Positions 2,246 to 2,411 of a DNA stretch of 64,000 bases are shown here, piece by piece. The notes below the pieces were generated by a model. The model was given only the letters and a program-made list of their open reading frames with translations. It ran no database searches and was not told the DNA's origin. How positions within the stretch are numbered: the stretch's first letter is position 1; the number at the start of each line of letters is the position of its first letter. The translations under genes were made by a program, and so were the position numbers. This stretch comes from Perna viridis (Eukaryota). The DNA lies in NCBI GenBank assembly GCA_037379345.1, contig CM074512.1:67167597-67231596 (forward strand). Direction: 5' to 3'.

Positions 2246-2348
2246 CGATTGTGTACATAGAAGTTTTTAATAGTACATTATTTTTAACAATTGTAAAGTA
2301 TTTTATATAAACTATGTGGTTTCAGTGAACAATAAACAAACACTATAT

Positions 2349-2411
2349 CCTGCTCAAAATCCTACTTCCACCTCCCCGTGGAGAGCAGGGGACACTGACT
2401 AACGGAAGAGG
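2349..2411 (+). ncRNA. Candidate HDV-like (nested double pseudoknot) self-cleaving ribozyme, minimal/P4-less
   Basis: P1 cctgctc 2349-2355 with gagcagg 2383-2389. P2 cct-a-cttcc 2361-2369 with ggaag-agg 2404-2411. P3 acc/gga around L3 tccccgt 2373-2379 (UCCNCGY). P1.1 cc 2374-2375 with gg 2390-2391. J4/2 ctaa 2399-2402. Deviations: A-A mismatch in P3, C at +1, one extra J4/2 base. Confidence 0.55.

Follow-up and report, generated by a model that had tools for sequence, protein, structure and literature searches.

A probable P4-less hepatitis delta virus-like ribozyme between the transposase gene and the 3' terminal repeats of a Mutator-like DNA transposon in the mussel Perna viridis

Where mobile elements carry self-cleaving ribozymes, the connection known to date is with mobility through RNA, with ribozymes resembling that of hepatitis delta virus (HDV) at the 5' ends of retrotransposons and hammerheads in Penelope-like elements and retrozymes. 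The locus described here lies in a 64,000-nucleotide stretch of the Perna viridis genome (GenBank assembly GCA_037379345.1, contig CM074512.1, positions 67,167,597 to 67,231,596, forward strand; hereafter the window, whose coordinates are used throughout), where positions 2349-2411 (+) read as an HDV-like fold inside a cut-and-paste DNA transposon, a Mutator-like element (MULE) encoding FLYWCH and MULE transposase domains. Among HDV-like ribozymes, classical HDV needs G at the first base after the cut (+1) (PMC2835756). A published design descriptor holds this G constant and sets the joining strand J4/2 as C-R-R-A (PMC6326823), and U is the base preferred at -1 in HDV (PMC1874588). The active L1TcRz ribozyme begins with C1 (PMC3185411), so that G at +1 is not universal. 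Helix P4 is dispensable and natural P4-less HDV-like ribozymes exist (PMC10879173), with P4-less minimal HDV-like forms credited to Riccitelli 2014 as cited in PMC10879173, and the cleavage rate of drz-Agam-1-3 is quoted as 2.7 per min (bioRxiv 10.64898/2026.10.01.755752). In the collection of papers searched in full text, none connected HDV-like ribozymes with DNA transposons, with Mutator-like elements, with such transposases or with terminal inverted repeats (TIRs); the ribozyme class is known, and the host element and 3' placement are new. Judged from sequence comparison, 2349-2411 is likely to be a copy of a drz-Agam-1-subtype HDV-like ribozyme that forms a built-in module of a FLYWCH-MULE clade.

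Direct reading of 2300-2440 recovered all parts of the HDV-like nested double pseudoknot except P4, each on the transposase sense strand. A preliminary description of the same site had named this strand correctly and was exact to the base in every coordinate. The parts are as follows.

2331..2336, + strand: AATAAA hexamer, with its last base 12 nt upstream of the predicted cut
2348..2349, + strand: predicted scission site between U-1 (2348) and C+1 (2349), at the 5' end of P1
2349..2355, + strand: P1 5' strand CCUGCUC, with 7 Watson-Crick pairs to 2383-2389
2356..2360, + strand: J1/2 AAAAU, the same in drz-Agam-1-3 and the RF01787 consensus
2361..2369, + strand: P2 5' strand, with 8 pairs to 2404-2411 and A2364 bulged
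2370..2372, + strand: P3 5' strand ACC, from direct reading and sister copies
2373..2379, + strand: L3 UCCCCGU, with C2374 and C2375 in P1.1
2380..2382, + strand: P3 3' strand, GGA in the window copy, where A2382 is a private mutation
2383..2389, + strand: P1 3' strand GAGCAGG, from direct reading and the cross-taxon alignment
2390..2391, + strand: P1.1 3' strand GG, such that C2374/C2375 can pair with G2391/G2390
2392..2398, + strand: 7-nt linker in the place of P4, where sister lineages have hairpins of 4 to ~18 bp
2399..2403, + strand: J4/2 CUAAC, with C2399 the putative general-acid cytosine and C2403 an extra base
2404..2411, + strand: P2 3' strand GGAAGAGG, 8/8 paired

Of the features that define the class, P1, P1.1, P3 with L3, P2 and the J4/2 catalytic C followed by N-R-A are all present, and L3 obeys the U..CG rule of the published descriptor (PMC6326823). 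Two others depart from the class: a 7-nt unpaired linker stands where a P4 helix is expected between P1.1 and J4/2, and the +1 base, usually a G in a G.U wobble, is C2349 paired with G2389. All MULE-type copies have C at +1 (U once), and the 'AT' immediately 5' of P1 is retained in nearly all relatives. The J4/2 cytosine is kept in every intact relative as CUAA, CUGA, CAGA or CGAA, CUAA being the RF02682 consensus, with CCAAC in drz-Agam-1-3, and the bulge position of A2364 recurs in drz-Agam-1-3 and in metagenome relatives. Two reservations of the preliminary description are met by precedent, since C at +1 occurs in the active L1TcRz (PMC3185411) and the extra J4/2 base, like the P2 bulge, in the active drz-Agam-1-3. 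In two otherwise distant copies (L026 and L031) C2369->A and C2403->U occur together, a hint that the extra base of J4/2 may interact with the final position of P2.

A third reservation concerned P3, which in the window copy consists of CC/GG plus an A2370.A2382 mismatch at the outer pair, and for which a change of 2382 from A to T had been predicted to give the canonical helix. At least 34 near-identical copies of 2250-2480 (96-99% identity) were found in the genome, and the MULE family is young and abundant. T stands at 2382 in 33/33 near-identical sister copies and in the contigs of all four runs searched, and P3 is the canonical ACC/GGU in the same 33/33 copies, so the mismatch is private to the window copy. 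The motif as a whole is retained in the sister copies, and 27 copies pass the full HDV descriptor described below.

The fold was then placed within its host element. The copies have fixed ends, and many of them have lost internal sequence with both ends intact, which is the pattern expected of a cut-and-paste element; the transposase domain, the TIRs and an 8-bp target-site duplication (~8-11 bp in the class) are those of a MULE. Transposase exons were searched one by one, unjoined, and natural copies were used in place of a family consensus.

428..2547, + strand: FLYWCH-MULE cut-and-paste element, with ends identical among genome copies and Pfam FLYWCH and MULE domains
420..427, no strand: left target-site duplication CTGAAATA, repeated at 2548-2555
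428..563, + strand: 5' terminal/subterminal inverted-repeat region with TTGAGCGAC-type motifs (repeat families D2, I1, I2, I8, I9)
776..1134, + strand: transposase exon 1, FLYWCH zinc finger (PF04500, E 3.2e-9; open reading frame (ORF) 776-1147; donor at 1135 predicted)
1309..1754, + strand: transposase exon 2, MULE catalytic domain (PF10551, E 3.4e-9; acceptor predicted)
1755..1878, + strand: intron 2, GT..AG, removed in RNA-type contigs
1879..2245, + strand: transposase exon 3, stop TAA at 2243-2245, broken by a 204-bp deletion in the window copy
2420..2547, + strand: 3' terminal/subterminal inverted-repeat region with GTCGCT[CG]AA motifs (repeat families D1, D3, D5, I1, I2, I8, I9)
2548..2555, no strand: right target-site duplication CTGAAATA, the same 8 bases as 420-427

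Inverted repeats join 436-563 to 2435-2539, giving imperfect ends of ~130 bp. The 8-bp CTGAAATA duplication was confirmed by the flanks, which overlap by these bases in uninterrupted copies of the host repeat (such as L008). Homologues of the transposase numbered 2742, the full-length ones ~460 aa. The window copy is non-autonomous, with ~204 bp absent at 1958/1959 (exon 3) compared to sister copies; one of these (L004) has an intact 203-aa exon 3 ORF that is 40-46% identical to the C-termini of the full-length ~460-aa MULE proteins. The ribozyme starts 103 nt past the stop codon, and 136 nt separate its last base from the element end. This position between transposase stop and MULE end makes it part of the MULE, as the preliminary description had supposed, rather than the 5' end of an inserted retroelement; all that follows downstream is MULE terminal repeat (136 nt) and the target duplication. 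Features of a retrotransposon 5'-end ribozyme were likewise missing at the site: no reverse transcriptase (RT) gene follows, the scission site is not at the 5' boundary of the element, and the transposase lies upstream.

The MULE is itself inserted in another dispersed repeat (292-427 and 2548-2604) that ends in a (CAAT)n run at ~2578-2601 and is uninterrupted in L008, L021, L023 and L037; in L051 a shortened ribozyme abuts the same repeat in reverse orientation. A sub-threshold Rfam match to SNORD15 at 2422-2553 (-) (28.3 bits, cut-off 75) covers the 3' subterminal repeats and probably arises from repeated TGAGCGAC-type motifs.

Diverged relatives have the fold in an equivalent position. With a covariance model built from the motif, 116 genome matches were obtained over a continuous score range, of which 23 divergent ones were read. 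No fewer than four diverged MULE lineages of this genome have the ribozyme at a constant position while their 3' untranslated regions (UTRs) and subterminal repeats differ, and two lineages from other samples also have it there. Each of lineages B, C and D has a MULE transposase upstream, on the strand of the ribozyme and with its end 80-150 nt from it. The lineage B protein (L046/L047) has 41-50% aa identity to the window family transposase; lineages C (L052) and D (L055, with the FLYWCH end retained) were assigned by weak tblastn matches to full-length MULE proteins. Among ORF pieces upstream of L038, L041, L048, L052 and L053, Pfam returned no family, and tblastn with the full-length MULE proteins matched only L052 and L055, weakly. 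Self-BLAST of the 2.5-kb flanks returned no TIRs for lineages B, C and D, only subterminal motifs downstream.

P4 is present in lineages B (~18 bp), C (4-6 bp) and D (8-10 bp) and in L068, L069 and L080, always between P1.1 and J4/2 and with unrelated sequences among lineages, and is replaced by a 6-7 nt linker in the window family, L033/L038 and L041. The window family is thereby a natural P4-less ('minimal') form.

Further features were noted around these lineages. A GGTTT(T/C)AGTG(G/A)AC block at 2305-2330, 20-30 nt 5' of the scission site, is shared by lineages A, A' and C and stands at the same place in L031, L039, L044, L048-L050 and L053. The TTTYAG ~25-30 nt upstream was considered as the acceptor of a 3' UTR intron and rejected, as no joint occurs there in the RNA-type contigs and a contig is continuous over 2072-2341. 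About 1.65 kb downstream of a lineage B ribozyme, on the same strand, a 270-aa RT-like ORF of the non-LTR type (L047:33-845, -) is most likely a neighbouring insertion, and ~15 tandem repeats of 57-bp period (L055, oriented, ~248-1046) lie upstream of a deleted lineage D element.

Outside this genome, metagenome contig L068 has a MULE transposase upstream of a ribozyme whose P1 is the same as in the mussel copies. An intact 429-aa MULE transposase (P0002, on contigs from three runs), 45% identical to the last exon of the window family, is followed 68 nt past its stop by a ribozyme (L080) with a compensated P1 CUUGCUC/GAGCAAG, a P4 of 4 bp, J4/2 CGAA and four subterminal repeats downstream. No ribozyme was found in the 103-433 nt past the stop of P0001, P0003, P0004, P0005 and P0033, from which the module appears patchy rather than universal in the MULE clade. 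A tRNA-like segment upstream of the intact MULE (L080:122-193; Rfam tRNA 25.2 bits, below cut-off) is probably a tRNA-derived short interspersed nuclear element. Metagenome contigs L066/L077, L067, L072/L074 and L076 carry the same core subtype, but their first pair is G.U and their P1/P2 sequences are different, and Pfam gave nothing above cut-off on the contigs with these G+1 ribozymes; L074 has two inverted ribozyme copies, and L072 has sub-threshold twister-P1 (33 bits) and RAGATH-11 matches nearby.

This distribution bears on whether the motif is a relic, captured once from another element such as the 5' end of a retrotransposon and carried along without serving the transposon. MULEs capture foreign DNA (Pack-MULEs), the motif is patchy among MULE relatives, a P1 mismatch is tolerated in non-autonomous sub-families and some deletion derivatives are without part of the motif, all of which suit a hitch-hiker. 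Yet neither the position nor the strand of the motif changes among lineages that share 25-50% protein identity, whose 3' UTRs and terminal repeats are beyond alignment, and the catalytic C, L3, P1.1 and P2 are intact after the loss of P4 in separate P4-less lineages (L002, L033, L041). As no retroelement-like sequence adjoins it either, we regard a relic as unlikely.

The preliminary description had pointed to the Rfam HDV-like models, and both align exactly at the site, but the window copy scores 24.5 bits with RF02682 and 19.9 bits with RF01787, below the gathering cut-offs of 44 and 37 bits. A sister copy reaches 30.2 and 26.9 bits, respectively, and sister copies at ~30 bits with RF02682 correspond to E ~0.3 per 723-Mb genome. 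All matches (28/28) in an RF02682 scan of that genome are at copies or relatives of the motif. Three P4-bearing relatives score higher with RF02682, with L052 (45.4 bits) and L068 (44.8 bits) above 44 and L080 at 43.5 bits. The HDV descriptor, built from the HDV consensus but composed after the site was seen, matched once in the 64-kb window, at this site, and not at all in 200 dinucleotide shuffles, both strands included. A chance resemblance within a GC-rich island would agree with the sub-threshold scores of the window itself (E 0.31 in an 8-kb search) and with minimum free energy z-scores of the nested part that are not significant. The empty shuffles, the conservation family-wide and across samples, the relatives over the Rfam cut-off and the cross-taxon covariation all speak against chance, which on these comparative data is refuted for practical purposes and retains a vanishingly small probability.

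The covariation that the preliminary description proposed to look for is not significant within the genome, but P1 covaries strongly across taxa. Among 19 sequences from the genome, 87.8% of cells pair compared to ~50% with slid partners, but shuffled data give values as high as the real ones. Conservation of the columns is too strong to allow a usable test, and within-genome covariation as sole support for the fold was dropped because of these shuffles. Compensatory changes were seen at P1 pair 1 (CG/UA, L056), pair 2 (CG/UA, in L080 from outside this genome) and pair 6 (UA/AU), and P2 pair 3 varies as UA/UG/CG. Metagenome contigs were also searched with J1/2, the first two P2 bases, P3 and L3 as the only fixed parts of the pattern, the P1 strands and the rest of P2 being free. 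This gave 14 contigs, ~10 of them with full P1 and P2 pairing in several different helix sequences, and P2 is 8/8 paired across five different sequences in relatives found this way. In a 14-sequence cross-taxon alignment 94.6% of cells pair and 6/7 P1 pairs change on both sides, and the observed covariation is reached in 0/500 shuffles; P1.1 is invariant in 14/14 sequences, so it offers no covariation for or against. The cross-taxon P1 covariation leaves the fold of the subtype well supported, and the support for the MULE-type members consists of conservation and a few compensatory changes.

Several observations weigh against a working ribozyme at this locus. The Rfam scores of the window and its near-identical family are below the cut-offs, only one pair is double-changed within the genome (P1 pair 6, UA/AU), which is not significant, and C rather than G stands at +1. 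An older sub-family (L031, L043-45, L049, L050) has a U.U mismatch in P1, and the ribozyme is absent after 5/6 other MULE relatives found by protein (103-433 nt). Lineages with only 25-50% protein identity share 92-94% of their P1/P2 helix sequences, and catalysis alone does not explain such near-frozen helices among MULE lineages. Lastly, a spliced 921-nt contig from run X4 passes the stop codon and the ribozyme uncut to 2468, so that uncleaved read-through RNA exists.

Some of these points suit a conserved element that is not catalytic, either a DNA or RNA site bound by a host factor or by the transposase, or a structured part of the 3' UTR, the pairing being secondary or the ribozyme no longer active. 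P1, J1/2 and P2, nearly frozen among the MULE lineages, are freely variable elsewhere in the subtype, C+1 departs from the G1 rule (PMC2835756, PMC6326823), P4 is missing from the window family and the spliced contig is uncut. Against this, positions needed only for catalysis are kept (the J4/2 C, the L3 U..CG and both P1.1 pairs), P4 hairpins are gained and lost at the canonical site, a curated ribozyme model gives 43.5-45.4 bits to three relatives associated with MULEs, the changes in P1 and P2 are compensatory, and C+1 is active in L1TcRz (PMC3185411). A non-catalytic role is therefore given a low probability. That the motif genuinely belongs to the HDV-like fold family and is borne by MULE transposons is highly probable on the sequence evidence, and the family form probably self-cleaves; for the window's own copy cleavage is less likely than for the family form because of A2382.

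Evidence on the transcript came from runs taken as RNA, which are assembled contigs from three organisms and as such cannot display RNA ends. The intron 2 splice joint 1752->1877 (skipping 124 nt, cut +2, GT..AG) is present in contigs of runs X1 and X4, and this GT..AG joint in two runs identifies genuine spliced transcripts: the element is transcribed and spliced. The exon 1 donor at 1135 was not seen in these contigs. RNA-type contigs also span 2374-2547. A hexamer A[AT]TAAA lies at most 35 nt upstream of the scission site in 13/24 related copies, covering most lineages, compared to 8% of background windows, an enrichment to which the AT-rich leader may contribute in part. In run X4 the depth at 2342-2379 (ribozyme core) is ~10-20x that of the transposase exons, and the core is joined at 2342-2346 by several contigs whose upstream sequences are unrelated; the depth and varied junctions indicate that organism C holds or expresses many different elements with this core.

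Across lineages the module is placed on the transposase-sense transcript about 70-150 nt past the stop, after A(A/U)UAAA and ahead of the 3' terminal repeats. This fixed place ties it to 3' end formation of the transposase transcript. As a proposed mechanism, the nascent RNA would fold P1, P1.1, P2 and P3, and C2399 with a bound Mg2+ would, from the chemistry of the family, catalyse attack by the U2348 2'-OH. The upstream product would be the transposase RNA with a 2',3'-cyclic phosphate end 12 nt past AAUAAA, and the downstream product a 5'-OH fragment comprising the ribozyme and the 136-nt terminal repeat. The purpose would be 3' end insulation, the coding transcript being severed from the 3' TIR and host flank. 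Such insulation would limit read-through and TIR-TIR snap-back pairing, or would reinforce or help termination at the neighbouring poly(A) site; it is the most likely purpose and even so a tentative one. Some deletion derivatives are without part of the motif and non-autonomous sub-families tolerate the P1 U.U, a pattern in keeping with service to the transposase message and not to transposition in cis.

The ribozyme could also be active with the downstream RNA as its useful product, a 5'-OH molecule of ribozyme and 3' TIR that acts as a regulator, decoy or small-RNA precursor, with trimming of the mRNA incidental. [quoted passage not shown] However, apart from being terminal repeats the downstream part is wholly different between lineages, no discrete RNA was seen among the assembled contigs, and the tight link to the stop codon and poly(A)-type hexamer favours the upstream transcript. 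We consider a downstream product very unlikely to be the useful one.

The fullest form of the preferred reading, a selected working ribozyme across an animal MULE clade, with members in several mussel lineages and in unrelated environmental and sequencing-run assemblies, that cuts the transposase transcript beside its poly(A) signal and keeps the 3' TIR out of the mRNA, is plausible, and we incline slightly against its holding in every part. If true, exclusion of the 3' TIR would blunt silencing by TIR snap-back double-stranded RNA or read-through, and this would be the first ribozyme function in a DNA transposon. DNA transposons too would then shape their own transcripts by catalytic RNA, offering a testable handle on how transposons respond to read-through and TIR-derived double-stranded RNA, a compact natural eukaryotic P4-less HDV-like ribozyme that starts with C, and a genomic setting that may explain the drz-Agam-1 subtype.

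The closest described ribozyme is drz-Agam-1 (RF01787) of Anopheles gambiae, compared via the drz-Agam-1-3 sequence (bioRxiv 10.64898/2026.10.01.755752) and the RF01787 consensus. It shares J1/2 AAAAU, a P2 that begins CCU with a bulged A at position 4, P3 ACC/GGU, L3 UCCNCGU, a two-pair P1.1 and a 5-nt J4/2 ending in C; in contrast, the window copy has a different but fully compensated P1 sequence and C instead of G at +1, and its family is without P4 and scores 19.9-26.9 bits, below 37. The long-orphan drz-Agam-1 may be another MULE-borne case. The best-scoring curated model is HDV-F-prausnitzii (RF02682), with P1 GCUGCUC against CCUGCUC in the window, the same P3/L3 core and J4/2 CUAA, although it is bacterial, unrelated to such transposases, and its 5-bp P4 is absent in the window family (24.5-30.2 bits). 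The 5' ribozymes of R2, RTE and L1Tc are likewise HDV-like folds of mobile elements acting on the element's own sense transcript, and L1TcRz shares C at +1 (PMC3185411). Theirs stand at the first base of the element and free the 5' end of an RNA that is reverse transcribed, whereas the window ribozyme is near the 3' end of a DNA transposon without an RNA intermediate and the coding RNA would be its upstream product. The minimal P4-less and phage theta ribozymes (PMC10879173) also have a short linker for P4 and ~60 nt in total, and the theta ribozymes likewise stand on the 3' side of a functional upstream RNA. These forms come from metagenomes and from gut phages, beside tRNAs, whereas the window ribozyme comes from a eukaryote and stands after a protein-coding gene, and P4 persists in its sister lineages.

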